NCBI GenBank assembly: GCA_028826165.1
Contig: JAPDFW010000124.1
Coordinates: 97,392-161,391 of the forward strand
DNA: 64,000 nucleotides
Direction of reading: 5' to 3'
Source of the DNA: Anaeramoeba ignava BMAN
Lineage: Eukaryota; Protista; Anaeramoebae
Below are positions 12,862-51,378 of this stretch, piece by piece. Position 1 is the first letter of the stretch. The number at the start of each line of letters is the position of its first letter. Under the pieces are notes generated by a model that was not told the origin of the DNA, ran no database searches, and saw only the letters and a list, made by a program, of their open reading frames with translations. Position numbers and translations under genes: made by a program.

Positions 12862-15051
12862 TCAATTTTTAATAATAAATTTATTAATAGATTTAAATTT
12901 TATTCCAATTTTATTTAATTTTATATATATTTTATTTAATTTTATTAAATTATTAATTATTCAAAAATTATTCAAAAATATTTATATTTTATTATTTAAT
13001 TTTTTATTTAAATTTTTAATAATAAATTTATTAATAGATTTAAATTTTATTCCAATTTTATTTGATTTTATATATATTTTATTTAATATTATTAAATTAT
13101 TTATTATTCAAAAATATTCAAAATTATTTATATTTTATTATTTAAATTTTTAATTCAATTTTTAATATTTAATAAAAAATTTTATTTCAAAAATTATATA
13201 TATTTTATTTTATTTTTAAATTATTCATTATTCAAAAATATTCAAAATTATTTATATTTTATTATTTAATTTTTAATTCAATTTTTAATAATAAATTTGT
13301 TAATAAATTTAAATTTTATTTCAATTTTATTTAATTTTTATATACTTTATTAAATATTATTAAATTATTTATTATTCAAAAGTATTCAAAAATATTTATA
13401 TTTTATTATTTAATTTTTTAATTCAATTTTTAATAATAAATTTATTAATAAATTTAAATTTTATTCAATTTTTATTTATTTTATATAATTATTTTATTAA
13501 AATATTATTATTATTTCAAAATTATTCAAAATATTTATATTTTATTATTTAAATTTTTATTTAAATTTTTAATAATAAATTTATTAATAAATTTTAAATT
13601 TTATTTTATTTAATTTTATTATATATTTTTATTTTATTAAAAATTATTAATTATTCAAAATTATTCAAAATTATTTATATTTTTATTATTTAATTTTTTA
13701 TTTCAATTTTTAATAATAAATTTATTTATAAATTTAAATTTTATTTCAATTTTATTTGATTTTATATATATTTTATTTAATATTATTAAATTATTTATTA
13801 TTCAAAATTATTCAAAAATATTTATATTTTATTATTTAATTTTTATTTAAATTTTTAATAATAAATTTATTAATAAATTTAAATTTTATTTCAATTTTAT
13901 TTAATTTTATATATACTTTATTAAATATTATTAAATTATTTATTATTCAAAAGTATTCAAAAATATTTATATTTTATTATTTAATTTTTAATTCAATTTT
14001 AATAATAAATTTATTAATTAAATTTAAATTTTATTCCAATTTTATTTAATTTTTATATATATATTATTAAATATTATTAAATTATTAATTATTCAAAATT
14101 ATTCAAAATTATTTATATTTTATTATTTAATTTTTAATTAAATTTTTAATAATAAATTTATTAATAAATTTAAATTTTATTCCAATTTTATTTGATTTTA
14201 TATATATTTTATTTAATTTTATTAAATTATTCATTATTCAAAAATATTTAAAAATATTTATATTTTATTATTTAATTTTTTATTTAAATTTTTAATAATA
14301 AATTTATTAATAAATTTAAATTTTATTTCAATTTTATTTAATTTTATATATATTTTATTTAATATTATTAAATTATTTATTATTCAAAAATATTTAAAAA
14401 TATTTATATTTTTATTATTTAATTTTTTATTTAAATTTTTAATAATAAATTTATTAATAGATTTTCAAAAATTTTATTTAAATATATATTTATATTTTAT
14501 TATTAAATTATTAATTATTCAAAAAGTATTCAAAAATATTTATATTTTATTATTTAAATTTTTATTTAAATTTTTAATAATAAATTTATTAATAAATTTA
14601 AATTTTATTCCAATTTTATTTGATTTTATATATATTTTATTTAATTTTATTAAATTATTAATTATTCAAAATTATTCAAAATTATTTATATTTTATTATT
14701 TAATTTTTATTTAAATTTTTAATAATAAATTTATTAATAAATTTAAATTTTATTTCAATTTTATTTGATTTTTATATAATAAATTATTAAAATTTTTATT
14801 CAAAATTATTCAAAATTATTTATATTTTATTATTTAATTTTTATTTAAATTTTTAATAATAAATTTATTAATAAATTAAAATTTTATTCCAATTTTATTT
14901 GATTTTATATATATTTTATTAAATATTATTAAATTATTAATTATTCAAAATTATTCAAAAATATTTATATTTTATTATTTAATTTTTTAATTCAATTTTT
15001 AATAATAAATTTATTAATAAATTTAAATTTTATTCCAATTTTATTTAATTT
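12862..15051. repeat. ~145-bp tandem array A (~15 copies) between divergent gene starts
   Basis: The anchor AATAATAAATTTATT (single variants allowed) recurs at 12871, 13018, 13287, 13432, 13571, 13712, 13857, 14001, 14148, 14294, 14441, 14576, 14721, 14855 and 15001 (spacing mostly 134-147). Confidence 0.92.
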
Positions 15052-15148
15052 GGATTCTTCCAGAAAAAAAATGAAAAATCAAAGTCAATTTTTAATGTTT
15101 TTGTTTTTGTTTTTTTTTTGTTAAATTTCATTTTTTCTTTTTTTTTAA

Positions 15149-15989
15149 ATGGTAAATTTAATTTGAATTTTTAATTTGAATTTTTAATTTGAATTTAATT
15201 TTCTAAAATAGATTAATTTTACTCCAAAAAATTTAGATTTGAATTGGGAAAATATTTTAAACTTTCCAATTCAAGAATTCCAAAAAAATGTAAAAAGAAA
15301 AATGTCAAAAAAAATGTCAAAATTTTAAATTAAAATTTTAAATTAAAAATTGTTAAAAAAGAAAGTTGATAAATCTCTTTTATTAGGTTTAGAAGATCTT
15401 TATGTTCCTTTAATTAGATCTAAAATAAAAGAAACTGATTCAAATTGTTCTGTTAAAAATTTAATTAAACTTTTTCAAATAATTCAATATGTAATTGAAT
15501 TTAAAGAGAATTTAATTAATAAACAAAATTCAACTGAAAGTAAAAAGAAAAAAAAATAAAGAAAAAAAAATCCCGAATTCCAAATTTTTTTATTAAAATT
15601 TTTTTTTATAATTAGATTTGGAAGAAATTAAAAATAAAATGAAAAATTTACAAGCAATTAATTCTAAATTAATTCAAGAAACTGAAGAAAATTTTATTCT
15701 TAGAAAAAATCTTTATTCACTTGAGCAAATTAATTCAAAATTAGAAAGAAAACTTAATGTTGATTTCCAAAATAAAATTTCAAAATTAGAACAAAAAAAT
15801 CAATTTGAAAAATTTCATTCTAAAGATGATTTAAATGAAGAAATTTTCCAAAAAACTTTAAAAAATTTAGAATTAAAATTTGATTTGGAACAATTAAATT
15901 TAATGATTCAAAGAAAAGACCAAAGAATAAAAGAACTTGAATGGGAAATTTTGTTTGTAAGAAACATTTTAACAAAAAATATAAATTGA
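15149..15989 (+). CDS. Dzip/Iguana-like N-terminal domain coiled-coil protein; exons 15149-15151 (ATG only), 15212-15289, 15362-15539, 15616-15989
   Basis: GT-AG joins give MINFTPKNLDLNWENILNFPIQ...LIKLFQIIQYVIEF, resembling the Dzip-like_N pattern (F.PR...DW...LLKLIRLAQFTIEYL), followed by coiled coil. Confidence 0.6.
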
Positions 15990-15999
15990 ATTTTGTTTT

Positions 16000-18900
16000 T
16001 CAATTTGATATTTTTTGCAAATAAATTTTCACTAAATTTTGAATTTGAACACTAAAAATTTTTGACAAATAAATTTCCTCAAAATTTTCAATTGAAAAAC
16101 TAAGTTGAGCCAAGCAAATAATTGTATATTTTCTAATTTCTACATTTTCATCATAAACTAATTTCTTCAAAAAAAATAAAATCAACTTAATCTGTGAAGA
16201 AACTATTTGATTTGAATTTGCAATTTTGATTGTTTGAATCAAAATTTCAAGAACAATTTTAATTGAAATGAAATGACGAGAAACTTGAAAATTTTTGGAA
16301 AATAAATTCCTGATAAATTGAGTTATAATTCCAAAAACTTTTGAAACATCAAGTTTTGAAATGATTAAAGTAATAACTTTTTTCAACATCCAAAATTGAT
16401 TTTCATCTAAAAAATCTGTTTTTGATAAACTTGGCGATATTAATAATTGATTAACAATTTGTTGAGAATAATTCATGAAAAAATCTTCATTTTTTACAAT
16501 TAAAATCTTCTTTAAAATCTCAAGAATAATTTCATCTTCATTTAAATCATGGAAATGATTATTTGTTCTTGATTTTCTTCGTTTTGAATTGGTTTTGATT
16601 CTTTTTATTAATGCTTGAATTATCTCCAAGAATTCTTCATCTTTTTTTGGTTGATTTTCTTCTGATAATATTTGTAATAACTGTCTAAGACTTGCTTCAC
16701 AATTCTCATTTCCTTTTTGAATCATATTTACTAAATACATTATAATTTTGTTTCTTTGGTTTTTCTTTGAGTTCATTATATTATTTGTTTTTGGGAAATC
16801 ATTTTCAATAAATTTTGTTCCTAGTTTTTCTAAATTTCCTCCAAATTCCTTTTCATTTCCCGTATTTTTTTGGAATTGATTCCATTCATTCTGGAAATTT
16901 GGTTCTTCTTTTCGTAAAATATGGGAAATTTTTGTTCTTAATTCATAAGAAAGAAGTGTTAAATTCTTGAAAAATAATTGAGAATCAAGTGTATAAATTG
17001 TTACGATTATAAATTCTGTCATTTTCATTTCTTTTGGTTCTGGATTCTCTAAAAAAATTGATATTTTTTCCATTAGAGTATTGATTTTCATTTTGTTTTT
17101 CATTTCATTTTTGTCAAAAGATTTACACATTTCTTCAATAATTTCAGAAATTAATTGCAAAATGTTTAATTTTGATTTAATAGATTCAGCAGAAAGCAAT
17201 TCTGTTAGGAAATCAAGGATAATTGATTCATCATAAATTGTTATAATTTTATGAATTAAAATATTTGCAATTTGTTTGATTAATTTGTTGTCATTTGATA
17301 GATATTCCACAATTTGAGGAATTATTTTTTCAAGATAATTTTCCATTTGAATTTGATATTGATTAAAAAGTTCCATCAATATTTCCATACAAATTATAAT
17401 AATGCTGATTTCCTTACATTTCATATTATCAATTACTATTTGGATAATTCTATGTAATTGATTTTGATCCTGAATAATTTGTTGGATATATATTTTTAAT
17501 TTATTAAATGATTCTTTTTTTAGATTTAAATTTAATTTTGGATTTGAATTTGAATTTGAATTTGAATTTGATTTTGAATTTAAATTTAATTTTGAATTTG
17601 AATTTGAATTTGAATTTGAATTTGAATTTGAATTTAATTTTGAATTTGAATTTAATTTTGATTTTGAATTTAAATTTAATTTTGAATTTGAATTTGAATT
17701 TGGATTTAATTTTGATTTTGATTTTGATTTTGAATTCGAGAGAATATTGATTATATTAGTGATTGAGTCTTGTTTTTGATTGATTTTGCTTATTGAGGAA
17801 GTTATTTGATAAATTTTTTTTTGGTTCAAATTTTGATTTTTAAATTGATTTTGATTTTGATTTTGATTTTGATTTTGATTTTGATTTTGATTTTGATTTT
17901 GATAATTGATTGAATTCAATTTGAAGTTGTAAGAAATGGATCTTGGAGTATTTCTTTTAATTTTGATTAGATTTTCTTTTTGATTTTGATTTTCATTTTT
18001 AAATTCATTTTTAAATTGAATTTGATTTTCTTTTTTAAATTCATTTTTAAATTCATTTTGATTTTGATTTTTAAATTCATTTTGATTTTGATTTTGAATT
18101 TGATTTTGATTTTTAAATTCATTTTGATTTTTAAATTCATTTTTAAATTGATTTTGAGTTTGATTTTGATTTTGATTTTGATTTTTAAATTCATTTTTAA
18201 ATTCATTTTTAAATTGATTTTGATTTTGATTTTGATTTTGATTTTGATTTTGATTTTGATTTTTAAATTCATTTTTAAATTCATTTTTAAATTCATTTTT
18301 AAATTGAATTTGATTTTGATTTTTAAATTCATTTTGATTTTTAAATTCATTTTTAAATTCATTTTTAAATTGATTTTGATTTTTAAATTCATTTTGATTT
18401 TGATTTTGATTTTTAAATTCATTTTTAAATTCATTTTTAAATTCATTTTTAAATTCATTTTTAAATTGAATTTGATTTTGATTTTTAAATTCATTTTGAT
18501 TTTTAAATTGATTTTTAAATTCATTTTTAAATTCATTTTTAAATTCATTTTTAAATTGATTTTGATTTTGATTTTTAAATTCATTTTGATTTTTAAATTG
18601 ATTTTGATTTTTAAATTCATTTTGATTTTGATTTTGATTTTCTTTTTTAAATTGATTTTTAAATTTATTTTGATTTTGATTTTGATTTTGATTTTGATAA
18701 TTGATTGAATTCAATTTGAAGTTGTAAGAAATGGATCTTGGAGTATTTCTTTTAATTTTGATTGGATTTTCTTTTTGATTTTGATTTTGATTTTTAAATT
18801 GATTTTGATTTTTAAATTGATTTTGATTTTGATTTTTAAATTCATTTTGATTTTTAAATTCATTTTGATTTTGATTTTTAAATTGAATTTGATTTGGAAT

Positions 18901-19823
18901 TTGATTTGGAATTTGATTTGGATTTGAAGTTTCCTTGAATAATAAATCTTTTCTTATTGGAAGTGCCTCCTTTTCCATTAACAAATATTTTCTTGTTTTT
19001 TCATCTTGTTTCATCATTAATTCTCTTCCTGTTTCTGGGAAATGCTCCAAAAAAATCCACATTGCTTTCCTTGCTGTTTTTCTTGATTCTTTTTGAGAAT
19101 CATGCAAGGAAACTGCTAATATTTCTTTGATATCATCTTCAAAAAAAAATAATTGATCTGTAGATAGTTTCCTCAAGAATAAATAGGTATATTTAATAGA
19201 TTTTATTCTTAAATCTGGGTTATGAGAAATCATATTATTCTTAATATAAGGAATAATTTGAGGCACATTAATATTTTTGCAAACTTGTTTAATACAATTA
19301 TGACATGATTTGGAAATAACTTCGTTTCTTGATCCTGATGATTTGAATAAACTTGGAAATAAATTCTCAAATCCACTTTGGAATTGATTTCTCAAAACTC
19401 TTGATAAATGAACAATAAAAAAACAAATTTGTTTAACTAAAGTAGAACGTAAATTTAAAACTTGCAAAGAAATTAAATTCAAACAACTTGAAATTAATTC
19501 TGGAAATTGACCAAATTTTGGATAAATATCTCCATTTAAAATTCCATGAAATCGGATAATTCCTTCATGTCTAATAGACCATTGCTCATTTTTAAGTGAA
19601 TTCTTAAATTTGATAATTTCTTTTTCAAGTTCTTCTTTTGATCCAATCTAATTTTTTCAAAATAAAAAATGGAAAAGAAAAAAATGAATTTTAATTTTTT
19701 TTTCAAAATAAAATTTACAAATATTTTTGAAACTTCTTCTCCAACTTTTTCCCAACCAATATGTTGAAAAGCTTCTTTTTTCCATTGGTTATTTTGATTA
19801 TTTGAAATTTTTCCAAATTCCAT
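16000..19823 (-). CDS. CLASP-family (TOG/HEAT) microtubule-associated protein with a long Q/N low-complexity insert; exons 19823-19719 and 19647-16000
   Basis: The spliced N-terminus IGSKEELEKE...EQWSIRHEGI...NLRSTLVKQIC...ESRKTARKAMW matches CLASP_N (TOG2). C-terminal HEAT repeats end in DENVEIRKYTIICLAQL, as in the CLASP C-terminal domain. Confidence 0.82.
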
Positions 19824-20029
19824 TTTTCTTTTTTTTTGATCAAAATTGGGATTTTTTTTTTAAAAAAAAAAGATTTGAAAAAAAACAAAAAAATGATCAA
19901 TTAAATTTTGTTTTCTTTTTGAATAAAAGAAGAACAAAAATGCCAGAAAATAATAACAATAACAATAACATAAATCAATAAGAATAATCCAAACCAATAA
20001 CATTTACATTTGACTTTGAATTATTAAAG

Positions 20030-21215
20030 TAATAAAATATTGAAATAAAATTAAATAAATTTTTTATTAAATATTTATAATAATTATTAATATATTTTAA
20101 TTATAATTTTAATTATAGATCTTTTTATATTATTATTTTAAATTAAAATATTGTAAGAAATCAAATAATTTCTATTAAAAATGTTGAAATAAAATTAACT
20201 AAATTTTTATTAAATATTTATAATAATTATTAATTTATTTTAATTATAATTATAATTATAGATCTTTTTATATTATTATTTTAAATCAAAATATTGTAAT
20301 AGATTTAATAATTTCTATTAAAAATATTGAAATAAAATTAAATAAAATTTTTTATTAAATATTTATAATAATTATTAATTTGTTTTAATTATAATTATAA
20401 TTATAGATCTTTTTATATTATTATTTTAAATCAAAATATTGTAATAAATTTAATAATTTTTATTAAAAATGTTGAAATAAAATTAAATAAATTTTTATTA
20501 AATATTTATAATAATTTTTAATATGTTTTAATTATAATTATAATTATAGATCTTTTTATATTATTATTTTTAAATTAAAATATTGTAATAGATTTAAATA
20601 ATTTTATTAAAAATATTGAAATAAATTTAAATAAAGGTGAAAATTTTTATTAAATATTTATAATAATTATTAATTTATTTTAATTATAATTTTAATTATA
20701 GATCTTTTTATATTATTATTTTAAATTAAAATATTGTAATAAATTTAATAATTTTTATTAAAAATATTGAAATAAAATTAAATAAAAAAGGTGAAAAATT
20801 TTTATTAAATATTTATAATAATTATTAATTTATTTTAATTATAATTATAATTATAGATCTTTTTATATTATTATTTTAAATCAAAATATTGTAATAGATT
20901 AAATAATTTTTATTAAAAATATTGAAATAAAATTAAATAAAAAAAGGTGAAAAATTTTTATTAAATATTTATAATAATTATTAATTTATTTTAATTATAA
21001 TTATAATTATAGATCTTTTTATATTATTATTTTAAATCAAAATATTGTAATAAATTTAATAATTTTTATTAAAAATATTGAAATAAAATTAAATAAAAAA
21101 GGTGAAAAATTTTTATTAAATATTTATAATAATTATTAATTTATTTTAATTATAATTTTAATTATAGATCTTTTTTAAATATTAGATTTACTTGAATATT
21201 AGAAGTAAATTAAAT
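20030..21215. repeat. 143-156-bp tandem array B (8 copies) upstream of CLASP
   Basis: The anchor GATCTTTTT occurs at 20118, 20261, 20406, 20549, 20701, 20856, 21012 and 21167. Later copies carry an (A)nGGTGA insertion. Confidence 0.92.
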
Positions 21216-21726
21216 AATTTTTTATTGATCTTTTTATTAATAATAAAAATTTTTTTTTCTTTTTTATTTAATTTTATTTCAATTAAAAAGGAGAAGCAAA
21301 AAAGAAAAACAAAAAAATGGAAAGAAGAAAATGAATAAGAATAAGAAAATCAAAGAATTTCCTTTATTTTCTTTTTATTAATTATTGTAAAAAGAACTTT
21401 TTTTTTTTTAATTAAATATTGAACTAATAAAATTTTAATTAAAAAAAAATAAAAAAATTTTTTTCTTTTCTTTTTTTTTCTTTTTATTTTTAATTACTTT
21501 CCATTTATTTTTTAATAATAAAATGAATTAGATCTTATTAATTAAAAAAATTATAAATTAAAATAATTAAATAAAAATAATTAAAATAATTAAAAATGAA
21601 AATTTTTTTTTTCAATTTTTTTTTTACATTTTTTTTTTTGGATTGGATTGAAATTTTTTTAATTGTTTGTTTTTTTTGCTTGTTTAAAAAATATAAAAAA
21701 AACAAAAACAACACATTAAAAAATTA

Positions 21727-21822
21727 AAATAATTGAAATATTAATACTTGGTTGTTTGTGGAGTCTATCTAAAAAATAGATAGAGTTCACAAACAACCAA
21801 GTATTAATTGTTTTAATTATTT
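21727..21822 (+). ncRNA. Candidate pre-miRNA-like hairpin
   Basis: Inverted repeat 21740-21771 / 21777-21808: 32-bp stem with one G-G mismatch, one G.U pair and a 5-A loop. It extends 13 bp further with two more G.U pairs on the + strand. Function is unproven. Confidence 0.45.
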
Positions 21823-21935
21823 GATTTGATTTGATTTGATTTGATTTGATTTGATTTGAGTTGATTTGATTTGATTTGTTGATTTGATTTAATTTGTTGA
21901 TTTAAGTTGATTTGATTTGATTTGATTTGATTTGT
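21820..21935. repeat. (TTGAT)n microsatellite
   Basis: Visible pentamer repeat starting at the 3' foot of the hairpin. Confidence 0.9.
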
Positions 21936-22254
21936 TTTGGGTATAAAATTATTCAAAAAGGAAATTAAAATTTTCATTAATTCAATTTTTGTTCCACCTT
22001 TCCAAATTTAAAAATAAAATAAAAACAAAACTCTTTTTTCTTTTTGTTTATTTCTTTTTAATTTTAAGATCACAAAAATAAAAAATAAAAAGGGGAATAA
22101 ATTGACTTAAAAAATTTAAATTAAAATAAACATAAAAAACACGAAAGAAAATTAATAATTTATCTTTTTTTTTCCTTTTTAATTCAATAATAATAAAAAT
22201 CAAAAAAAAATAAAAGAAAAAAATTTTTCTCATTGATCATTTAAAATCCAAAAA

Positions 22255-23142
22255 AAATTTCTCAATTCAATTTAATTTAATATTCAATTTTTATCCAATT
22301 TAATTCAATTCAATTTAATATTTCACCCAATTCAATATTATTTAATATTCATTTAATATTTCAATATTTAAATTCAATATTTAATATTCAATTATTTTAT
22401 TTAATATTCAATTCAATTCAAATTCAATATTTAATTCAATTTAATTAATTTTAATTTAATTCAATTTAAATTTAATATTAATATTATTTATTTAAATATT
22501 CAATATTTAATTCAATTCAATATTTAATTTATTTCAATATTTATTTCATTCCAATTTCAAATTTCAATTCAATATTTCAATTCAATATTTATTCAATATT
22601 CAATTCAATTTTCATTTATTTAATTCAATATTTATTCCGATATTTAATTCAATTTCAATTTAATTCAATATTTAATTCAATTCAATTTTCAATTTATTTA
22701 TTCAATCAAAATTTAATTTCAATATTTAACACAATTTAATCAATATTTCAATTCAATATTTTTCAATTCAATTCAATTTAATATTTAATTCAATTCATTT
22801 TTAATTCAATATTCAATATTTAATTCAATATTTAAATATTCAATTATTCAATGTTTGAATTTAATATTTGAATACAATTCAATATTTAATTTTAATATTT
22901 ATTAATTCAATTCAATATTTAATACCAATATTTAATTCATTTCAATTTTTAATTCAATATTTAATTCAATATTTATTTCAATATTTAATTTAATGTTCAA
23001 TTTAATATTCAATTCAATATTTAATTCAATATTCATTTCAATATTTAATTCAATATTCATTTCAATATTTAATATTTAATTTAATTCAATATTTAATATT
23101 CAATATTTATTTCAATATTTATTTCAATATTCAATTTAATAT
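22255..23142. repeat. Degenerate (TTCAATATTTAA)-type low-complexity repeat 3' of the ATG2-like gene
   Basis: Visible recurrent TTCAATATTT motif with irregular spacing. Confidence 0.8.
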
Positions 23143-27996: not shown

Positions 27997-28118
27997 GTTT
28001 TAAAAAAAATGAAAAAAAATGAAAAAAATAAAAATAAATTTTAAATTTTTTTTTTCATTTTTTTTTTCCTTCTTTTTATTTTTTAATTAAGAAAAACTTA
28101 AAAAAATTTTAAATTAAA
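27997..28118. promoter_or_regulatory. Compact 122-bp bidirectional promoter with TCATTTT Inr-like motifs on both strands
   Basis: Divergent ATGs at 27996(-) and 28119(+). AAAATGA occurs twice near the minus-strand start and TTCATTTTT at ~28055. Confidence 0.6.
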
Positions 28119-32289: not shown

Positions 32290-32432
32290 AAAAATAAAAG
32301 AAAAAAAATAAAAGAAAAAAAATAAAAGAAAAAAAATAAAAGAAAAGAAAATAAAAGAAAAGAAAATAAAAGAAAAGAAAATAAAAGAAAAGAAAATAAA
32401 AGAAAAGAAAATAAAAGAGAAAAAGAGGAATA
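32290..32432. repeat. 15-bp purine-rich minisatellite (AAAATAAAAGAAAAG)n
   Basis: Visible, immediately 3' of the WD40 gene stop. Confidence 0.9.
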
Positions 32433-32433
32433 A

Positions 32434-36952: not shown

Positions 36953-37059
36953 TTTTGTTTTTAATAAATAAAAAAATTTAAAAAAAAAAATGAAATTTGA
37001 AAAAGCAAAAAAAATTTTTTTTTCAATTATAAAATCTCTTTCTACATTCACTAAATCAA

Positions 37060-37960
37060 ACTAATCAATTTAATAATAAATTTAATAATCAATTTAATAA
37101 TCAATTTAATAATCAATTTAACAATAAATTTAATAATCAATTTAACAATAAATTTAATAATCAATTTAACAATCAATTTAATAATAAATTTAACAATAAA
37201 TTTAATAATAAATTTAATAATCAATTTAATAATAATTTTAATAATCAATTTAATAATAAATTTAATAATCAATTTAATAATAAATTTAACAATCAATTTA
37301 ACAATAAATTTAATAATCATTTTAACAATAAATTTAATAATTAATTTAATAATCAATTTAATAATCAATTTAATAATAAATTTAACAATCAATTTAATAA
37401 TAAATTTAATAATAAATTTAATAATCAATTTAATAATCAATTTAATAATCAATTTAATAATAAATTTAATAATCAATTTAATAATCAATTTAATAATTAA
37501 TTTAATAATCAATTTAATAATTAATTTAATAATAAATTTAATAATAAATTTAATAATAAATTTAATAATAAATTTAATAATAAATTTAATAATAAATTTA
37601 ATAATAAATTTAATAATAAATTTAATAATAAATTTAATAATAAATTTAATAATAAATTTAATAATCAATTTAATAATAAATTTAACAATCAATTTAATAA
37701 TAAATTTAATAATAAATTTTATAATCAATTTAATAATAAATTTAATAATCAATTTAATAATAATTTTAATAATCAATTTAATAATAAATTTAATAATAAT
37801 TTTAATAATCAATTTAATAATCAATTTAATAATCAATTTAATAATAAATTTAATAATAAATTTAATAATCAATTTAACAATCAATTTAATAATAAATTTA
37901 ATAATAAATTTAATAATAATTTTAATAATAAATTTAATAATAATTTTAATAATAAATTCC
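37060..37960. repeat. 12-bp minisatellite (AATTTAATAATM)n, ~75 copies
   Basis: Visible. It produces the spurious IIKF/IIKL ORF 37051-37968. Confidence 0.95.
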
Positions 37961-38097
37961 AAAACCAATTTTAATAATCTTTTTTTATTGTCTTTTGTTA
38001 TTTAGATTTGTTTTGTAAAGAAAAGAAAGAAAGTGTGAAAGAATAAGAAAGAGAATAAGAAAAATTTTTAAATGAATTATTTTTCTTTTTCATTTGA

Positions 38098-41000: not shown

Positions 41001-43068
41001 AGATGCATAAGGTATTCCTTTCCAAAAATATGGATTATATGATAAAACAATATTAATTAAAGAAAATACTAATAATTTCTTATATAATCCATTGTGTTCA
41101 ACCAAAATATATTCCAACCATTTGTTTTGAAAAAGATAATAATTTTCTATCAGAAATAAAAATATATTAATTTTAATTTTAATTTTCAAAATGAATTTTA
41201 ATTTTATAAATCAATTTTATAAATCAATTTTAATTTTAATTTTAATTTTAATTTTAAATTTTAATTTTATAAATCAATTTTATAAATCAATTTTAATTTT
41301 AATTTTAATTTTAATTTTAATTTAATTTTAATTTTAATTTTAAATTTATAAATCAATTTTAATTTTAATTTGAAATTACTTTGATCAACATAAAGTGTTT
41401 CTGAAAAACATGATAATAAACATTTCAAAAGTTCTGTTAATCTTAAATTAATTTGAGAAGAAGTTCCTTTAAAATTTGTATCAATTTTATACATAAATTT
41501 CGATTTTAACTTTTTTTGAGGTTTTTCAATATTATCTTGATTAACTGTTTTTTGAGTTTTTGGAAAAACTGGAATAATTCCATGTTCCCAAATTAATTCT
41601 TGAAATGCTTTTTGTAATTTTCTATCTGTTTGAATTTTCTTTTTTGGTGAATCATGGTTTTGAATAAAATAATCATAATATATTTTTGTTGATATATCCA
41701 AAGTGAAATCTGGAAGAAACATTAATTGAAGTAATAAATCGATTAAATGATATGCAAGAGGTTTAGTTTTATCTCTTGGAGGAAGAGTTTGATTTTTTTC
41801 TTTTTCATTTTCATTATCATTTAATTTTTCTTTTTCTTTTTCTTTTTCATTTTCATTTTCATTTTCATTTTCATTTTCATTTTCAATTTCTTTTTCAATT
41901 TCTTTTTCATTTAAATTTAATTTTTCAATTTCACTTTCATTTTCATTTTCATTTTCATTTTCATTTAAATTTTCATTTAAATTTTCTTCAATTTTCCAAA
42001 ATATTTCATCTACTAATCTTTTCCCATTTAGATTTGGTTTCTGTTCAAATAAAAATGGCATAATTCTTGTAATTACGCGAAGTACATTTCTTAAAATACT
42101 TTCATTTTCTCCAGTATAAGTTCCATCTCTTTTATAAAAAAATAGAAAACGCTCAATTTTTGTTATTGACTTTTTTTTTTTAAAATTAAAATTAAAATTA
42201 AAATTAAAATTAAAATTATAATTAAAATTAAAATTAAAATTCATTTATAATATTAAAATTAAAATTAAAATTCATTTATAAATTTAAAATTAAAATTAAA
42301 ATTCATTTATAAATTTAAATTTAAAATTAAAATTCATTTATAAATTTAAAATTAAAATTAAAATTCATTTATAAATTTAAAATTAAAATTAAAATTGAAA
42401 TTAAAATAGAAATTAAAATTAAAATTGAAATTAAAATTAAAATTAAAATTAAAATTGAAAATTAAAATTTAAAATTAAAATTAAAATTAAAATTCATTTA
42501 TAAATTTAAAATTAAAATTAAAATTATTAAAATTAAAATTAAAATTAAAATTAAAATTCATTTATAATATTAATTTAAAATTAATATTAAAATTAAAATT
42601 AATAATTAAAATTAAAATCAAAATTAAAATTAAAATTAAAATTAAAATTCATTTATAATATTAATATTAAAATTGAAATTAAAATTAAAATTAAAATTAA
42701 AATTAAAATTAAAATTAAAATTGAAATTAAAATTAAAATTAAAATTGAAATTAAAATTGAAATTAAAATTGAAATTAAAATTAAAATTAAAATTAAAATT
42801 AAAATTAAAATTCATTTATAATATTAAAATCCATTTATAAAAATATTAAAATGAAACCAACAATATTAATAATTGAAACTATATTTATTGGTTGTAAATC
42901 TCGAATTTTTCGTATATCTTGTGGTGTTAATAAAGAATAAACATCATTTTCTGTTGTTGGAGATCTGAAAAAAGTATTCCAAAACTCAATATTTGATTCT
43001 GGAATTTCTTTTTCAAATAAAATAAAAACTGACTTTCGAAAAACTTGTTTTGATTGATTTCCACCCAT
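38098..43068 (-). CDS. HID1: HID1 (HID-1/Ecm30, Dymeclin family) Golgi protein, 8 exons, with a (KQND)n C-terminal tail
   Basis: N-myristoylation-type start MGGNQSKQVFRKSV...FWNTFF...DVYSLLTPQDIRKIRD. Conserved blocks SLINIVLSYNP..KGIPY, LSENRDFGNLLN, NNLIHYQFK|GNMNFVFEVLKRK, FKPTKEWFEYW, YLQNTTLLGLIPIP. Exons 43068-42862, 42169-41380, 41146-40953, 40794-40136, 40030-39707, 39620-39535, 39457-39357, 39132-38098 all join in frame. Confidence 0.9.
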
Positions 43069-43224
43069 TTTTATTATTAGAAAAAAAGAAAAAAAAGAAA
43101 AAAATGGTAAAAAAAAAATGAAAAAAAAAATTTAAAAAAAAAAAAAGAAAAAAAATTTTTGTTTTTAAATTTAATTAAAAAAAAATATTTTTGAATTGAA
43201 TTTAAATTGAATTTAAAACTGCTT

Positions 43225-43614
43225 CTATTTTTGTTCATTTGTATTTAATTCGTTTGAATTTTTTGCTAATTGAGTTTGAATTTTCTTTTTACTTCTTTTT
43301 TTTCTTGGTTTTTTATTTTTGTTTTTAATTTTCTTTTTAAGAGAACTCATATTTTCTTTAATAAGACCAGCATAAGAAATTTGGAAACTAACAATATCTC
43401 TTTGATGAATATGAGTTGATATTTTTTTTTCACCATCAGTTGCTCTTATTAAACAAAAATATTCATGCGTTTCGTTTTTTTTGTTTTCGTTTTTTTTCTT
43501 ATGTGGCGCTACTCCATTCGTTCGTTTAAATGTTATAAATACACTTCCTTTCTTTTGATTTTTTTGAAATAATATTGCTAATTGTCGAAGAAATTCTTGA
43601 TATTTTAAAAGCAT
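43225..43614 (-). CDS. SRP14: Signal recognition particle 14 kDa subunit
   Basis: EFLRQLAILFQK...GSVFITFKR...CLIRATDGEKKISTHI...FQISYAGLIKENMSSLKKK is the SRP14 signature, followed by a basic tail. Confidence 0.93.
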   Translation of the reverse strand: MLLKYQEFLRQLAILFQKNQKKGSVFITFKRTNGVAPHKKKNENKKNETHEYFCLIRATDGEKKISTHIHQRDIVSFQISYAGLIKENMSSLKKKIKNKNKKPRKKRSKKKIQTQLAKNSNELNTNEQK

Positions 43615-43654
43615 TTTACAAAATGAAAAAAATGAAAAAAATAAAATTCAAAAA

Positions 43655-44535
43655 TTAAAAAAATTAAAAAATTTAAATTAAGAATAATCAATAATTAGAT
43701 TTGAAATTAATTTTACTTTATATTTTATTAATATTTATTTATTTAAAATAATATAAAGTTATTCTTAAAAATTAAATAAAATTAATAAAATATTTTAATT
43801 AATTTATTTCAAAATTTAAATCAAAAATAATCAATAATTAGTTTTGAAATTAATTTTATTTTATATATTTTATTAATATTTCTTTATTTAAAATAATATA
43901 AAACTTAATTTAAAAATTAAATAAAATTAATAAAATATTTTAATTAATTTATTTCAAAATTTAAATTAAGAATAATCAATAATTAGATTTGAAATTAATT
44001 TTATTTTATATATTTTATTAATATTTCTTTATTTAAAATAATATAAAGTTATTCCCAAAAATAAAATAAAATTAATAAAATATTTTAATTAATTTATTTC
44101 AAAATTTAAATCAAGAATAATCAATAATTAGATTTGAAATTAATTTTATTTTATATATTTTATTAATATTTCTTTATTTAAAATAATATAAAACTTAATT
44201 TAAAAATTAAATAAAATTAATAAAATATTTTAATTAATTTATTTCAAAATTTAAATCAAGAATAATCAATAATTAGATTTGAAATTAATTTTATTTTATA
44301 TATTTTATTAATATTTATTTATTTAAAACAATATAAAGTTATTCTTAAAAATTAAATAAAATTAATAAAATATTTTAATTAATTTATTTCAAAATTTAAA
44401 TCAAGAATAATCAATAATTAGTTTTGAAATTAATTTTATTTTATATATTTTATTAATATTTCTTTATTTAAAATAATATAAAGTTATTCTTAAAAATTAA
44501 ATAAAATTAATAAAATATTTTAATTAAAAAAATTT
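43655..44535. repeat. 143-145-bp tandem array C, block 1 (6 copies) upstream of SRP14
   Basis: The anchor TCAATAATTAG occurs at 43688, 43831, 43976, 44121, 44266 and 44411. Confidence 0.93.
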
Positions 44536-44545
44536 TTTGGAGATT

Positions 44546-46147
44546 TTAAATAAAATAAGTCTCAAGTTCATCAACAACCCAGGAATTATAAGAACCAGAT
44601 AAATAACTTCTGGATTCAGTTGTTCCATAATAAATTCCATTCGGGAGACAAAATGTAATACCAAAATTTGAATATCCGGATTGTAAACTAGAATCCAAAA
44701 AAAAATCACAATTCAAAAAGCCTTTCTTGCCGCCAAAATAGGGACCATATTTCGACAAACGATAATATATTGCATATTTTTCTTGATCTTGCTGGATTCT
44801 AAATTTTTCTGGCTTTCTATCTCCTTTATCATTTCTTAATGAGAAAATAAATGCATTTTGATCTTGAATGAAATCATAATCTTGATTTTCATAAATTCCA
44901 CTCCATTTTGATTTATCATTTGTCCATCCAACTTGAGTAAAACCTCCAAAAATAAAATTATCTTCTGTTTTGATAATAACTAATGTTTTTCCTTTCCCAT
45001 CAACTGCTTTATGCCAATTTTGAGAAGAAAATCCATCTCTTTTTGCTGAAAATCCTTTTTTCATTTTAGAAAAAAAATCATTATCATTTATCCATTCTTG
45101 TAATTTCTTAACATATTCAATATCTTTAATAATTTCTGAGTCTGCAAAAATCTTTTGTAATTGTTCAAATTCTTTTCGAAAAAGATGAAAAGTTGGTTTC
45201 ATTTTAGCAACTTTTTTCTTCCATTTCTCTTTTATTTCCTTTTTCATTTTTTGATTTTCCTTCTCTTTGTTTTCAATTTTCTTATCTTTTTTTTTATCTT
45301 GAATTTCAAAAATAGTTCTTTCAAAAGGAATTAAAAAAGAATTTGGAAGAAAAATATCAAATTGTTTTAATTTATCAAAATCTTGTTTTGAAATTGAATC
45401 TTTATCAAATAATGAAAAAAAAGAATGAAATAATCTTTTCTTTGCATTCATTTTGTGTTTATATTTCTTTAATTTTAATGATTTAACTCTTTTTTTAATC
45501 CAATTATTTAAAAATTGAAAAAAATCAAATTGAAAAATTTCTTTTTTTTCTTGTTTAAATTGAATAAATTTGATAATTTCTTCTTTAGTTAAATTGAATA
45601 AATTCTCATTATTTTGAATTTGGGAAAAATTTTGATTTATTAATTCAAAACATTTTATTTCAATTTCATTTGAATTTAAATTTCGATTTTGGAATAAAAA
45701 TTGGAAAAAATTTGAATAATTAATTGAATTTAAAATTTTTTTTTGAATAATTTCTTTCAATAAATTTAATTTAAAATAAATTGAAATTTCTAATAATTGA
45801 ATAAGATTTTCTTGATTCTCAAAAGAAATATTTCCATAATAAATATAACTCAAAATTGATTCCATTTCTTTTTTATTAAATTGATTTAAAGAAATAGAAA
45901 GAGATTCTTGCCTTAATGATTCATTAAAAAAAGGAGATCTTGAAGATAAAATTGATTTATGAACTTTAATTTCAAAAGGATTTGATTTATTCTCAACAAA
46001 AATTGAAAAATCTTTAAATGAATTTCCATTTAAAAGGTTTGAATAATCTTTAATTAAATTTTTTGTTACTTTTTTTTCTAAATTTTTCATTTCATTTTCA
46101 TTTTGATTTTGATTTGCATTTTCAATTTGGTTATTATTATTATCCAT
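44546..46147 (-). CDS. BTB/POZ-(BACK-like)-coiled coil-TLDc protein, intronless, 533 aa
   Basis: BTB: FKDFSIFV...IKVHKSILSSRSPFF...ILSYIYYG. TLDc: RDGFSSQNWHKAVDGKGKTLVIIKT, IFGGFT, AFIFSL, GPYFG, VDELETY. Confidence 0.9.
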   Translation of the reverse strand: MDNNNNQIENANQNQNENEMKNLEKKVTKNLIKDYSNLLNGNSFKDFSIFVENKSNPFEIKVHKSILSSRSPFFNESLRQESLSISLNQFNKKEMESILSYIYYGNISFENQENLIQLLEISIYFKLNLLKEIIQKKILNSINYSNFFQFLFQNRNLNSNEIEIKCFELINQNFSQIQNNENLFNLTKEEIIKFIQFKQEKKEIFQFDFFQFLNNWIKKRVKSLKLKKYKHKMNAKKRLFHSFFSLFDKDSISKQDFDKLKQFDIFLPNSFLIPFERTIFEIQDKKKDKKIENKEKENQKMKKEIKEKWKKKVAKMKPTFHLFRKEFEQLQKIFADSEIIKDIEYVKKLQEWINDNDFFSKMKKGFSAKRDGFSSQNWHKAVDGKGKTLVIIKTEDNFIFGGFTQVGWTNDKSKWSGIYENQDYDFIQDQNAFIFSLRNDKGDRKPEKFRIQQDQEKYAIYYRLSKYGPYFGGKKGFLNCDFFLDSSLQSGYSNFGITFCLPNGIYYGTTESRSYLSGSYNSWVVDELETYFI

Positions 46148-46231
46148 TTTGTTTTGTGTTTTTTGGTTTTGTGTTTTTGTTTTTTGTTTTGTTAAAAAAA
46201 ATGAAAAAAATAAAGGAAAAAAAAATGAATA

Positions 46232-46675
46232 AAAAAATTAAAAAATTTAAATTAAGAATAATCAATAATTAGTTTTGAAATTAATTTTATTTTATATATT
46301 TTATTAATATTTATTTATTTAAAATAATATAAAACTTAATTTAAAAATAAAATAAAATTAATAAAATATTTTAATTAATTTATTTCAAAATTTAAATTAA
46401 GAATAATCAATAATTAGATTTGAAATTAATTTATTTTTTATATTTTATTAATATTTATTTATTTAAAATAATATAAAGTTATTCCCAAAAATTAAATAAA
46501 ATAAATAAAATATTTTAATTAATTTATTTCAAAATTTAAATCAAGAATAATCAATAATTAGTTTTGAAATTAATTTTATTTTATATATTTTATTAATATT
46601 TATTTATTTAAAATAATATAAAGTTATTCCCAAAAATAAAATAAAATTAATAAAATATTTTAAATTAAAAAATTT
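46232..46675. repeat. 144-145-bp tandem array C, block 2 (3 copies) between the divergent BTB-TLDc and YgeW starts
   Basis: The anchor TCAATAATTAG occurs at 46262, 46407 and 46551. Same sequence and orientation as 43655-44535. Confidence 0.93.
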
Positions 46676-46715
46676 TTTTTTGTTTTTTTTTTTCATTTTT
46701 TTTCCAACAAAGAAA

Positions 46716-49700
46716 ATGACTGAAAAAGATAAATTTATTGAAAAAGCAAAAGAGAATATTGAAAAATTAAAACAATTAAAAACAGAAATTCATGGAACTG
46801 ATTTTTTAAGAACATGGGATCATACAAAAAATGATTTAGAAGCAGTAGTTTATGTAGCACAAGCACTTGAGAATATGATTAAAGCAAACATTTCATGCCA
46901 AGTTTTTAAGGGAGGTTTAGCAATTAGCAATTTCCGTAAATTAAAATTTTCTAATTGAAATTTTTTAATTGAATCTTTTAATTGAAATTTTTTAATTGAA
47001 TTTTCTAATTGAATTTTTTAATTAGGTGATCAAAGTACAAGAACAAGATTCTCTTATTCAAGTGCTGCTAATTTAGTTGGTCTCGCAAATAGTGAAATTG
47101 ATGAATCAAAATCTCAAGTTGCTCATGGTGTAATTAATCTTAATAAATTTTGTTTTTGAATTTTAAAATTGTTTTTTGTTTTGTTTTTGTTTTTGTTTTT
47201 GTTTTTAGGAAACTGTTAGAGAAACTGCAAATATGATTTCTTTTTTTGCTGAATTTTATGGAATTAGAGATGATATATTTCTTGTAAGAAAAATCATCAA
47301 TAAAATTTAAATTCAAAATATAATTTAAATCCAAAAATATAAATTAAATCAAAATATAATTTAAATTCAAAATATAATTTAAATCCAAAAATATAATTTA
47401 AATCAAAAATATAATTTAAATTCAAAAATATAATTTAAATTCAAAAATATAATTTAAATCAAAAATATAATTTAAATTCAAAAATATAATTTAAATCCAA
47501 AATATAATTTAAATCAAAAATATAATTTAAATTCAAAAATATAATTTAAATCCAAAAATATAATTTAAATCCAAAAATATAATTTAAATCAAAAATATAA
47601 TTTAAATCAAAAATATAATTTAAATCCAAAATATAATTTTTAAATCAAAATATAATTTAAATCCAAAAATATAATTTAAATCCAAAATATAATTAAATCA
47701 AAACACAATTTAAATCCAAAATATAATTTAATTCAAATTTAAAGGGAGAAGGACACAAATTCCAAAAAGAAGTTTCTGATGCTGTTGCTGATGGATTTAA
47801 ACAAGGAGTTCTTAATTCAAAACCACCAATTATTAATTTACAATGTGATGAAGATCATCCAACTCAATCTTTATCAGATTTAATTCATATTGCTCAATAT
47901 TTTGGAGGTTTAGAGAATTTAAAAGGAAAAAAGATTGCAATGACATGGGTAAATTATAATTTCTAAATCAAAAATATAATTTCAAATCAAAAATATTTAA
48001 ATCAAAAATATAATTTAAATCAAAATATAATTTAAATCAAAATATAATTTAAATCAAAATATAATTTAAATCCAAAATAATAAATTAAATCAAAATATAA
48101 ATTAAATCCAAAATATAAATTTAAATCCAAACATAATTTAATTCAAAATATAATTTAAATCCAAAAATATAAATTAAATCAAAAATATAATTTAAATCAA
48201 AAATACAATTTAAAACAAAAATATAATTTAAATCCAAAATATAATTTAAATCCAAAAATATAAATTAAATCAAAATCTAATTTAAATTAAAAATATAATT
48301 TAAATTAAAAATATAATTTAAATCCAAAATATAATTTAAATCCAAAATATAATTTAAATCCAAAAATATAATTTAAATCAAAAATATAAATTAAATCAAA
48401 ATATAATTTAATTCAAAAATATAATTCAAATCAAAAATATAATTTAAATCAAAAATATAATTTAATTCAAAATCAAAAAAGGCATTTTCTCCATCATATG
48501 GAAAACCTTTATCTGTTCCTCAAGCTATAATTGCACTTATGACAAGATTTGGAATGGATGTTAGATTAGCTCATCCTGAAGGATATGATTTAATTCCAGA
48601 AATTGTTGATTTAGCAAAAAAAAATGCAGAAGAAAATGGAGGAAAATTTACACAATTTAATAACATGGAAGATGCATTTAAAGATGCTGATATTGTTTAT
48701 CCAAAAGTAAATTAAATATTAAATAATAAATAATATTAAATAATAAATATTAATTAATAAATAAATTAAATATTAAATATTAAATAATAAATAAATTAAA
48801 TATTAAATATTAAATAATAAATAAATTAAATATTAAATATTAAATATTAAATATTAAATATTAAATAAATTAAATATTAAATATTAAATAAATTAAATAT
48901 TAAATATTAAATATTAAATATTAATATTAAATAATAAATAAATTAAATATTAAATATTAAATAATAAATAAATTAAATATTAAATATTAAATATTAAATA
49001 TTAAATATTAAATAAATTAAATATTAAATATTAAATATTAAATATTATTTATAAATATTATTTAGTCTTGGGCTCCTTTTGTTGTTATGCAAGAGAGAAC
49101 TAAATTATTAAAACAAGGAAATGCTGTTGCTGATCAATTAAAACAACTTGAAAAAAAATGTATCGAAAAGAACAAAGAATTTATTGTAAATAATAATTTT
49201 ATATTTTTCTTTTAAATTTTAAATTAAACAAAAACAAATACTTAATCCAAAAATTAATTAAAATTTCTTTTATTTTTTTTAGAATTGGTAAAAAAATATT
49301 TTTTAATCAAATCAAATTAAATCAAAATTTATATTCTATTTAAAAAAATATTTTTTAAGGGAATGTGATGAAGAGAAAATGAAATTAACTAAAGATGGAA
49401 AAGCTCTTTATATGCATTGTTTACCTGGTAATTTAAAAATTGAATAATAATAAATACAAATAATTTATTTTAATAAAAATCAATTTAAAAATCAATTTAA
49501 ATTTTTAAGCTGATATTACTGGAGTAAGTTGTGAACATGGCGAAGTTTCTGCACAAGTTTTTGACAAATATAGAATTGACACTTATAAAGAAGCGGGTAA
49601 ATAAAAATAAAAATTAAAATAAAAATAAAAATAAAAATAAAAATTAAAATTAAAATTAAAATTAAAATTAAAATTAAAATTAAAATTAACATACAATTAA

Positions 49701-49880
49701 AATCTAAAATTAAAATTAAAATTCAAATTAAATTAAAATTAAAATTAAAATTAATAAATAAATAAAGGTCATAAAATGTATGTGATTTCTGCAATGATGT
49801 TATTGACTAAATTTAAAGATGTTCCTGAATTACTTACTCAATTAATTAAAGAAAATACACCAAGAAAAAAAGCAGATTAA
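46716..49880 (+). CDS. ygeW: YgeW-type (knotted) carbamoyltransferase, ATCase/OTCase superfamily, 406 aa, 10 exons
   Basis: Exons 46716-46935, 47026-47129, 47209-47283, 47745-47948, 48482-48706, 49066-49185, 49283-49287, 49360-49427, 49510-49596 and 49768-49880 total 1221 nt, all GT-AG. The protein has [74 protein letters not shown] and [15 protein letters not shown], which I recognise as YgeW blocks. Confidence 0.92.
47300..48480. repeat. ~20-bp intronic minisatellite (AAAATATAATTTAAATCC)n in YgeW introns 3 and 4
   Basis: Visible on both sides of exon 47745-47948. Confidence 0.9.
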
Positions 49881-50073
49881 ATTCCAATTTCAAATTTTAA
49901 TTCCAATTTTTCTTTCTTTTTCAATTCCAATTTTAATTTCAATTTCAATTTTAATTTTAATTTCAATTCTTCTTTCTTTTTCTTTTTTTTCTTTGATAGC
50001 AATCATAAAAGAATCCAATAAAATTTTTTCCAAATTAATTCACTTTCAAAAAAAAATTGTTTTTTATTTTTAT

Positions 50074-50074
<1 letters not shown>

Positions 50075-50135
<61 letters not shown>

Positions 50136-50136
50136 A

Positions 50137-50207
<71 letters not shown>

Positions 50208-50208
50208 A

Positions 50209-50255
<47 letters not shown>

Positions 50256-50675
50256 TATTGATAATTAACGCATTGGTAATAAAAATTTATTGATTAATTG
50301 GTAATTATTTGTCACCAAATAATATATATTTATTAATTGGGTTGACAAAAATTGATTGATTGGTTATTAATTTTATTTAATTAAGTAATTAGTAATTGGA
50401 TAATTGAATTGGTGGTAATTGATTGTAATTATTGGTAATTCAAATTGATTGGTAATTAATTAAAAATTAATTGAAAATTTATTCGAAATTATTATTTGGT
50501 GGTGATTGATTGGATATTATAAATAAAATGGTATTGGTATTTTGATAATTTAAATTTTATTTACAATTAACAAGGCTGACAATTTAATTTGATAATGACA
50601 ATTAATGATTGATTGTAATTGATAAAATTGATTTGATTTGGATTTTAATTAATTGATTGATTTATTGATTAATTA

Positions 50676-50746
<71 letters not shown>

Positions 50747-50767
50747 AATTAATTGATTGATTGATTA

Positions 50768-50802
<35 letters not shown>

Positions 50803-50820
50803 AATTAATTGATTGATTGA
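50075..50820. repeat. (ATTG)n microsatellite with a degenerate interior (50262-50650)
   Basis: Clean tetramer tracts flank a scrambled ATTG-like segment. Confidence 0.9.
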
Positions 50821-50825
50821 ATAAA

Positions 50826-51378
50826 GAAAATATAAATAACTAAATAATAAATTAATAATAAATAATAATAAAATTATTTTTAAATATTAATTTTATATTA
50901 ATTTATTTATTAAAACTTATTTAATTTAATTAAAAATTAAATAAAAATTAATAAAATATTTGATTTTAAAATATAAATAACTAAATAATAAATTAATAAT
51001 AAATAATAATAAAATTATTTTTAAATATTAATTTTATATTAATTTATTTATTAAAACTTATTTAATTTAATTAAAAAATTAAATAAAAAATTAATAAAAT
51101 ATTTAATTTACAAAATATAAATAAATAAATAATAAATTAATAATAAATAATAATAAAATTATTTCTAAATATTAATTTTATATTAATTTATTTATTAAAA
51201 CTTATTTAATTTAATTAAAAAATTAAATAAAAAATTAATAAAATATTTAATTTATAAAATATAAATAAATAAATAATAAATTAATAATAAATAATAATAA
51301 ATTATTTTTAAATATTAATTTTAAATTAATTTATTTATTAAAACTTATTTAATTTAATTAAAAAATTAAATAAAAAAT
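50826..51378. repeat. 141-144-bp tandem array D (~4 copies) upstream of the giant DUF3638-like gene
   Basis: The anchor TATAAATAA(C/A)TAAATAATAAATT occurs at 50831, 50972, 51116 and 51260. Confidence 0.92.

Follow-up and report, generated by a model that had tools for sequence, protein, structure and literature searches.

Why should short tandem arrays built almost entirely of A and T, and unrelated to one another in sequence, share a repeat unit of about 145 bp and lie next to the start codons of genes? The question is raised by a stretch of DNA from the protist Anaeramoeba ignava BMAN, 64,000 nucleotides long and called the window from here on (contig JAPDFW010000124.1, here C125, positions 97392-161391), which holds five such arrays: A, B, C1, C2 and D. 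The answer favored here, and considered fairly likely, is that they are short euchromatic satellites of 3-20 units whose unit length clusters at 141-147 bp, that the families present at several loci were copied together with gene-bearing segments, and that the preference for 145 bp is related to chromatin. Three elements of this answer are observed. Families C, D and E (the last from another contig) did not arise where they now stand; they were copied with a BTB module, with a (GATT)n junction or downstream gene, and with a Ras-type GTPase, respectively. Moreover, the copy number of the units changes by unequal exchange or slippage, as seen from paralogue copies of 6 versus 3 units and of 3.9, 4.9, 5.9 and 7.9, from dimer and trimer units, and from variants that differ by +/-11-12 bp. 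Finally, the arrays extend through the spacer to 10-90 bp from the Inr-like core promoter, or to ~20 bp from a stop codon.

The genome assembly amounts to 42.8 Mb in 147 contigs. The window has 18.5% G+C, long open reading frames (ORFs) in the standard code, and eukaryotic genes such as CLASP, SRP14, BTB-TLDc, ankyrin and WD40. For comparison, an unselected sample was taken from contig C1 (200 kb; the contig is distinct from array C1), and ten loci of 3.3 kb each were read elsewhere; the pooled test sequence for motif matches and shuffles comprised 264 kb. Arrays were located with Tandem Repeats Finder (TRF), monomers were delimited by unit-by-unit mapping, and genes were identified with Pfam, their orientation being judged from ORFs, Pfam matches and an initiator-like (Inr-like) motif. 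Families were compared by aligning consensus units against AT-matched nulls, and by profile hidden Markov models (HMMs) against decoys. Repeats are everywhere in this DNA: AT-rich tandem arrays of at least 200 bp account for 21-24% of the sequence in the window and the 200 kb sample, and, counted over every period, for ~75% of the DNA whose G+C content is below 12%. The dominant unit lengths are 6 and 12 bp, and short-unit satellites are found in introns and in every type of spacer.

Are the five long-unit arrays real? They had been reported from the letters of the window alone, in what is called here the first-pass annotation, and TRF recovers all of them at the positions then reported, with consensus units of 145, 145, 145, 145 and 144 bp (A, B, C1, C2 and D, in this order) and a consensus G+C of 3-6%. 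The G+C content of the arrays is 1.8-5.8%, and their extents are as follows.

12860-15051, strand not assigned: array A as delimited by TRF; period 145, also a 291 dimer.
12820-15051, strand not assigned: array A when its first unit, which is partial and decayed, is included; 16 units of ~145 bp, also organized as a dimeric higher-order unit of 291 bp.
20034-21175, strand not assigned: array B as delimited by TRF; period 155, consensus 145.
20034-21226, strand not assigned: array B by unit mapping; 8 units.
43668-44527, plus strand: array C1; period 145, 5.9 copies (TRF); 6 units of 143-145 bp.
46242-46668, plus strand: array C2; period 144/145, 2.9 copies (TRF); 3 units of 143-145 bp, with a degenerate lead-in from 46197.
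50827-51383, plus strand: array D; period 144, 3.9 copies (TRF); 4 units of 141-144 bp.

Unit mapping also agrees with the reported unit length of ~141-147 bp, drifting to 155 in B. Most of the 16 units of array A measure 143-146 bp, the exceptions being deletion variants of 120-133 bp and a single unit of 150 bp; array B consists of four units of 143-145 bp followed by four of 151-156 bp, the latter being an 11-12-bp insertion variant. In all arrays the units run head to tail and in register, with 86-97% matches inside an array, which is the homogenization expected of satellites. Higher-order dimers of 291, 311 and 285 bp reach the same scores as the monomers, and a 433-bp trimer is also seen. 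With units of 141-147 bp and dimers of 285-311 bp, the arrays fall in the range of nucleosome-length satellites (~140-180 bp or double). What they do not resemble are the long heterochromatic or centromeric arrays of hundreds of units: they have 3-20 units and lie between expressed-type genes.

Do these arrays belong to one family or to several? The first-pass annotation had distinguished four families, and the distinction holds: A, B, C and D are not alignable when judged against AT-matched nulls (z<=2.5), while arrays C1 and C2 match at z=20. Two further 145-bp arrays occur in the 200 kb of contig C1. One, family E (173799-175482), is not alignable with A, B, C or D; the other, family F, has a weak relation to D (z=5.2). 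All other pairs of consensus units remain at z<=2.6, and the profile HMMs gave no cross-family score above the decoys, except for D against its own 85%-identical relative. Care is required with such comparisons. Order-2 Markov shuffles of a dimer reach 141-168 bits, or ~75% identity, within the 264 kb. All four families of the window had BLAST matches at 70-76% identity, which gave the appearance of large superfamilies; these were rejected as noise because order-2 shuffles score equally. All genome matches at or below 76% identity were discarded, since BLAST statistics fail on two-letter DNA.

The next question is whether 145 bp is a preferred length. In the unselected 200 kb, the AT-rich arrays with long units have periods of 108, 113/125, 125, 136, 145 (E), 145 (F), 153, 168 and 179 bp, so that 145 is the commonest value. 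When this sample is pooled with the window, 6 of the 13 families fall inside a span of 5 bp (scan statistic p=0.001). The mode at 145 bp is probably real, though it is not the sole period. The idea of a common unit of ~145 bp in unrelated families survives in part: several non-alignable families do lie at 141-147 bp, but the periods of the unselected sample are broad (108-179 bp).

How, then, did arrays with the same period come to stand at so many places? For families C, D and E, all multi-locus in the genome search and more alike within loci than between them, the flanks give the answer. Two features of the window are needed to follow it.

44546-46147, minus strand: BTB-TLDc gene, intronless, identified with Pfam, between arrays C1 and C2.
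50601-50820, plus strand: (GATT)n microsatellite, to which array D is joined on its left.

Family C is 94-97% identical within the window, and it is found at 86-89% at no fewer than 39 further loci among 40 candidates scored. Arrays C1 and C2 bracket the intronless BTB-TLDc gene; they have an equal start, an equal end phase (unit position 137) and similar junctions. The 5' ~750 bp of this gene (45450-46196) are 95-99% identical at no fewer than 39 other loci, on many contigs (again with 40 candidates scored), and its 3' 350 bp (the TLDc end, 44540-44890) are only 72-78% identical among copies. At a minimum of 10 loci, same-strand C arrays lie 1.6-2.0 kb downstream of the mid-point of the BTB module (0.9 kb in the window), and at least 13 C arrays terminate in the same diverged 1.3-unit end. 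SRP14, on the left, and the gene to the right of C2 are single-copy; therefore, the repeated unit ends at the arrays.

Some observations on this region stand apart. The near-constant 5' module next to a diverged 3' part could have arisen by gene conversion, by a very recent spread of the BTB module, or through a mobile cassette. A search with the BTB-TLDc protein for encoding contigs on record returned no match. The 350 bp compared from the 5' part of the gene to the right of C2 are single-copy except for a stretch of ~85 bp (46939-47024), which is found at 14 or more loci at 88-94%; this stretch may be an intron containing a repeat, or else a small dispersed element.

Family D recurs at two loci of contig C50 and one of contig C60 (93-97%), on contig C79 (83-88%, with at least 20 units), and in weaker relatives; the copy numbers at these other loci are 4.9, 5.9, 7.9 and at least 20. 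The left junction with (GATT)n is identical at four loci (the window, the two on C50 and the one on C60), and the ends of the arrays agree in unit phase to within 5 nt. Between the window and C60, the right flank, which is the downstream gene, is 98% identical for at least 1.2 kb, and the arrays at these two loci have 3.9 and 4.9 units. The two loci on C50 have unrelated right flanks and unrelated left genes. As a side remark, the presence of (GATT)n at four D loci in three unrelated contexts resembles the microsatellite tail of a dispersed unit.

Family E has seven further loci at 89-96%, and the 350 bp of its left flank are 95-97% identical at all seven, directly abutting each array. This flank is the promoter and N-terminus of a Ras-family GTPase (Pfam Ras, 182 bits; contig C1 173025-173798), and the right flank is common to only two loci. 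Judging from these flanks, family E travels upstream of an eight-copy Ras-type GTPase gene.

In the three families, then, flanks, modules and junctions are conserved along with the gene duplicates, and it follows that period and position were inherited and that copy number drifted later. The first-pass annotation had proposed that each array was made by amplifying its local promoter-proximal unit. This cannot be maintained for C, D and E, which were inherited with duplicated genes, and only A and B are private. These two are single-locus arrays of the same design. For A, the genome search yields matches of <=76% only, the noise level of AT-only DNA; for B, it yields one borderline array (77-79%) on contig C13. 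The families with units of 153, 168 and 179 bp are each single-locus as well.

Two other repeats deserve a mention of their own. To the right of array B, isolated in a gene-free stretch, is a near-perfect inverted repeat (hairpin) of normal G+C at 21727-21822. On contig C1, at 222728-226338, there is a tandem duplication of a different kind: a 1829-bp unit in 2 copies, with 85% matches and a coding-type composition.

Another question concerns the position of the arrays with respect to the genes. The distances from array to ATG had been read correctly, with start codons at 12754 (CH/PH-type gene), 43614 (SRP14), 46147 (BTB-TLDc), 46716 (the next gene) and 51584 (~200 bp from D), and the ends of the arrays are 20-211 bp from ATGs. 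The names then given to the neighbors fared unevenly: CLASP, SRP14, BTB-TLDc and DUF3638 are supported by Pfam, but for "Dzip" and "CH/PH" the pieces tried, small exons beside array A, gave no Pfam match. An Inr-like motif, TCATTTT (AAAATGA on the other strand), helps to place the core promoters.

12803-12818, minus strand: two Inr-like TCATTTT of the minus-strand gene with ATG 12754; 8-17 bp from the first partial unit of A.
15128-15134, plus strand: Inr-like TCATTTT, 77 bp past the right end of A.
43620-43635, minus strand: two Inr-like motifs of SRP14 (ATG 43614); 39-48 bp from C1.
46198-46228, minus strand: two Inr-like motifs of BTB-TLDc (ATG 46147); 20-44 bp from C2.
46693-46699, plus strand: Inr-like motif of the plus-strand gene with ATG 46716; 25 bp from the right end of C2.

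The motif does not occur inside the arrays, which stop 8-91 bp short of it on the gene 5' side (144 bp for B). Their place is that of promoter tandem repeats, in the promoter and upstream of the start site. Array C2 lies between divergent core promoters, arrays B and D have a gene 3' end on their far side, and array C1 fills the whole spacer from the SRP14 core promoter to the BTB-TLDc stop codon (44546). The end of C1 is 19 bp from this stop codon; hence, the array must be the site of the BTB-TLDc transcript's 3' end as well.

Do the arrays mark gene 5' ends, as had been claimed? It is correct that no array of the window lies inside an intron or between convergent genes. Over all 145-bp arrays with readable context, none of nine is in a convergent spacer (p ~0.075, with a chance expectation of 0.75 for each to be non-convergent), and where a tandem-type spacer contains other repeats as well, it is the 145-bp array that stands nearest the promoter, in five cases of five (p ~0.03). 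The claim is suggestive only: the arrays do adjoin core promoters, but satellites of every period make up ~75% of the AT-rich non-coding DNA, C1 abuts a stop codon, and a private 151/168-bp AT-rich array lies between convergent ORFs (contig C1 201102-202879), a counter-example to the notion that long-unit arrays always mark 5' ends. The data are suggestive of a promoter link (p ~0.02-0.08), which is explained in part by inheritance and in part by the way arrays take up entire spacers. Elsewhere on contig C1 (263750-265994), two 108-bp arrays have minus-strand ORFs on both sides and lie beside an ORF of 2240 aa; they possibly lie in introns of one giant gene.

Although the families are not alignable, they are not entirely without common words. 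A short core common to C and D had been noticed at the outset, and it is real, if borderline: the in-phase global alignment reaches z=2.5 and ranks sixth among 144 rotations, and the two families have a word of 18 nt in common (p=0.03). The core lies within a nearly palindromic (dyad-symmetric) word, 16-26 nt long, which is found in C, D and E and is called the box in what follows.

44508-44518, plus strand: an example of the box core, TAATAAAATAT, in array C1.

This core appears once per unit in D (50949, 51092 and 51236), in E and in the 153-bp family, and once or twice (inverted) in C; A and F contain a close variant, and B has no exact box. Families C and E have an exact common word of 26 nt (null maximum 21; p<0.01), and 14 11-mers are present in four or more families versus 2.4 expected under an order-2 null. 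In the 264 kb, 41 of the 52 exact 12-mer matches to the box are inside long-unit arrays, and some are in 11-12-bp satellites. Over the genome, the exact 16-mer of C, D and E has 576 matches versus 274 for the reversed control, or ~2x; among 100 listed matches, 34 of 58 neighbor distances are at 142-149 bp, with another 10 at two or three times that length. When units are anchored on the box, the alignment of the remaining sequence does not rise above the null (z<=1.6). The box could be a protein-binding site, a relic of common ancestry or partly chance.

Two other candidates were set aside. The 10-mer ATAAAATTAA occurs in every family, but background satellites commonly contain it too, and it was not accepted as a specific motif. 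Likewise, in C, D, the 153-bp family and B the array ends fall on the box, which lacks significance because there are one or two boxes per unit.

As to physical properties, runs of A or T of 7 or more are rare in the 145-bp arrays (0-1.3 per kb versus 15-19 per kb in non-repeat AT-rich DNA, of which there is little), and single-strand folding of the units reveals no structure (z -1.7 to +0.6).

What could chromatin contribute? Put most simply, the preference for 145 bp would reflect one nucleosome core per unit, an explanation that has been proposed for satellites in general: units of core length would expand and persist more easily at the first nucleosome positions upstream of a gene. The scarcity of A/T runs fits a nucleosome-compatible DNA, and the dyad-symmetric box would be either a protein-binding site or the last trace of a common ancestry.

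Several points weigh against this reading. Only two of the nine long-period families in the unselected 200 kb are at ~145 bp (range 108-179), and the pre-specified test gives p ~0.1; the scan statistic rises to p=0.11 when D and F are merged and B is counted as mixed; and the window was selected for its arrays, which makes it a biased sample. A unit of 145 bp leaves no room for a linker and, to our knowledge, is shorter than any nucleosome repeat length. The genome does encode a linker-histone domain, which does not inform the repeat length. In addition, the arrays have no clear 10-11-bp helical phasing of AA/TT. Finally, at the other loci the link between C arrays and BTB copies is one of coordinates only, and coordinates also give the context of the other E loci.

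Could the common period be simply a family trait? All ~145-bp families may descend from one ancestral promoter-side satellite, with the period inherited through unequal exchange and the sequence diverged except for the box. Such descent is conceivable, though on balance doubtful. Within the D lineage, similarity is graded (97, 85-88 and 77-79%) with the period kept, and D is weakly related to F (z=5.2). The same-phase alignment of C and D (z=2.5), the shared words of 26 nt (C-E) and 18 nt (C-D), and the excess of 11-mers in four or more families (14 versus 2.4) point the same way. Yet alignments anchored on the box are at the null outside it (z<=1.6), the profile HMMs carry no cross-family signal, and private arrays of 153, 168 and 179 bp exist, the 153-bp family having the same box.

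Or are the arrays carried by transposons? They might be central or terminal repeats of mobile elements, such as Helentron-like non-autonomous ones, or the window might contain a long terminal repeat (LTR)-like insertion, [array - BTB ORF - array], between SRP14 and its neighbor. C1 and C2 resemble LTRs in that they are directly repeated, have the same boundaries and enclose an ORF without introns, in a genome rich in introns, and the 5' module of this ORF has at least 39 copies at 98-99% on many contigs, while the outside neighbors are single-copy. Likewise, identical ends and a microsatellite tail accompany the D arrays in three contexts that are unrelated to one another, and Helentron derivatives of the oyster contain satellite-like central repeats (PMC7492417). 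Nevertheless, the ORFs carried along are of cellular type (BTB-TLDc and Ras GTPase) rather than transposase or reverse transcriptase; Pfam finds BTB and TLDc only between C1 and C2, and no reverse transcriptase or integrase. No terminal inverted repeats, hairpins or target-site duplications are visible at the D or C junctions, those of C1 and C2 being of low complexity. Helitron arms, termini and 3' hairpin are also missing: the D loci share only the (GATT)n left junction, and the flank of E is a Ras GTPase gene. The genome has no match to Helitron_like_N (PF14214), although control genomes gave none either. The identity of only 72-78% among the 3' parts of the BTB-TLDc copies is unlike that of a recently mobile unit. 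Transposon carriage appears unlikely on this evidence.

A different view is that the arrays are there for what they do: each would be a multimerized upstream element, with a dyad box per unit bound by a dimeric protein, acting as a dose-tunable enhancer, insulator or origin with the spacing of one nucleosome. D, E and the 153-bp family do have one box in each unit, C has two, in inverted orientation, and A and F have a variant of it; 41 of 52 exact 12-mers are inside long-period arrays, and the arrays are promoter-proximal. Still, the 16-mer is only ~2x its reversed control, AT-only words recur easily, B is devoid of an exact box, and some exact matches are in 11-12-bp satellites, all of which makes a functional element of this kind rather improbable.

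A bolder version of the chromatin idea joins these threads, and it should be read as speculative and quite unlikely. Chromatin would act as a ruler, so that promoter-upstream segments of 141-147 bp are preferentially duplicated or retained regardless of sequence; the register would be set by one dyad AT box per unit, binding a dimeric protein. The arrays would then be self-phasing and tunable in copy number, and they may serve as recombination handles for the excision and reinsertion of cassettes composed of array, BTB gene and array.

The first-pass annotation had thought of a process that measures length: origin re-firing, Okazaki-size duplication or nucleosome-phased recombination would repeatedly amplify ~145 bp just upstream of promoters. 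A and B, private and unrelated and both with 145-bp units, are what such a process would leave, and the arrays begin where a -1 nucleosome would sit, 10-90 bp upstream of the Inr-like motif. It is hard to reconcile, however, with the inheritance of C, D and E along with gene duplicates and with conserved array ends, with the occurrence of periods from 108 to 179 bp, or with the 168-bp array between convergent ORFs; moreover, no single-copy progenitor of any unit was seen. The chances of this explanation are slim.

That the arrays or their copy numbers are artefacts of mis-assembled low-complexity reads is scarcely credible, given that they span 0.4-2.2 kb, well below long-read length, in an assembly of 147 contigs, that their units have array-specific variants and an ordered higher-order structure, and that the same families occur on many contigs with consistent ends.

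If these are short satellites at promoters, do they have counterparts elsewhere? Tandem repeats of variable number are present in yeast promoters, and enhancer repeats in the intergenic spacers of ribosomal DNA (rDNA). Like these, the arrays described here are directly upstream of core promoters and variable in copy number; those repeats are mostly short-unit or rDNA-specific, whereas here many genes of RNA polymerase II type are associated with unrelated units of ~145 bp.

The closest parallel comes from Tribolium castaneum, where the unrelated euchromatic families Cast1-Cast9 have a predominant unit of ~170 bp that was attributed to nucleosome length (PMC4675708). Both sets consist of mutually unrelated AT-rich families dispersed in gene-containing euchromatin, with a common unit length, variable copy number and junctions without obvious features (PMC4675708). 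The differences are that the unit is ~145 bp here, the length of the core without linker, rather than ~170 bp, with a G+C content of 2-6% and 3-20 units, and that the arrays, in a genome that is compact, come to within tens of bp of the core promoters, with three families demonstrably co-duplicated with genes.

The Cg_HINE Helentrons of Crassostrea gigas also form short satellite-like arrays at many loci, with each family tied to specific conserved flanks (PMC7492417), but what is conserved beside the arrays in Anaeramoeba is a cellular gene or a microsatellite instead of Helentron termini. Finally, non-alignable families with one short motif per unit are described for nematode satellites with a CENP-B-box-like motif (PMC3694981) and for Meloidogyne holocentromere repeats with a 19-bp box (PMC8097292). 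The box found here is AT-only, dyad-symmetric and modestly enriched, with no known link to centromeres.

What do these arrays teach? For those who annotate such genomes, there are two lessons: likeness between arrays at separate loci is often due to inheritance and not to independent origin, and BLAST E-values on AT-only DNA are misleading, with identities of up to 76% being noise. For the experimentalist, the arrays are small enough to be spanned by single reads and rebuilt in reporters, and they adjoin defined core promoters. If the preference for 145 bp is imposed by chromatin, this genome, with roughly a quarter of its DNA in tandem repeats and with short arrays of unrelated sequence flanking its promoters, would be a compact system in which to learn why satellites adopt the length of a nucleosome. 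As for the biology of Anaeramoeba itself, the linkage of three families to recently multiplied genes suggests that these arrays travel with gene duplication, or may even promote it.

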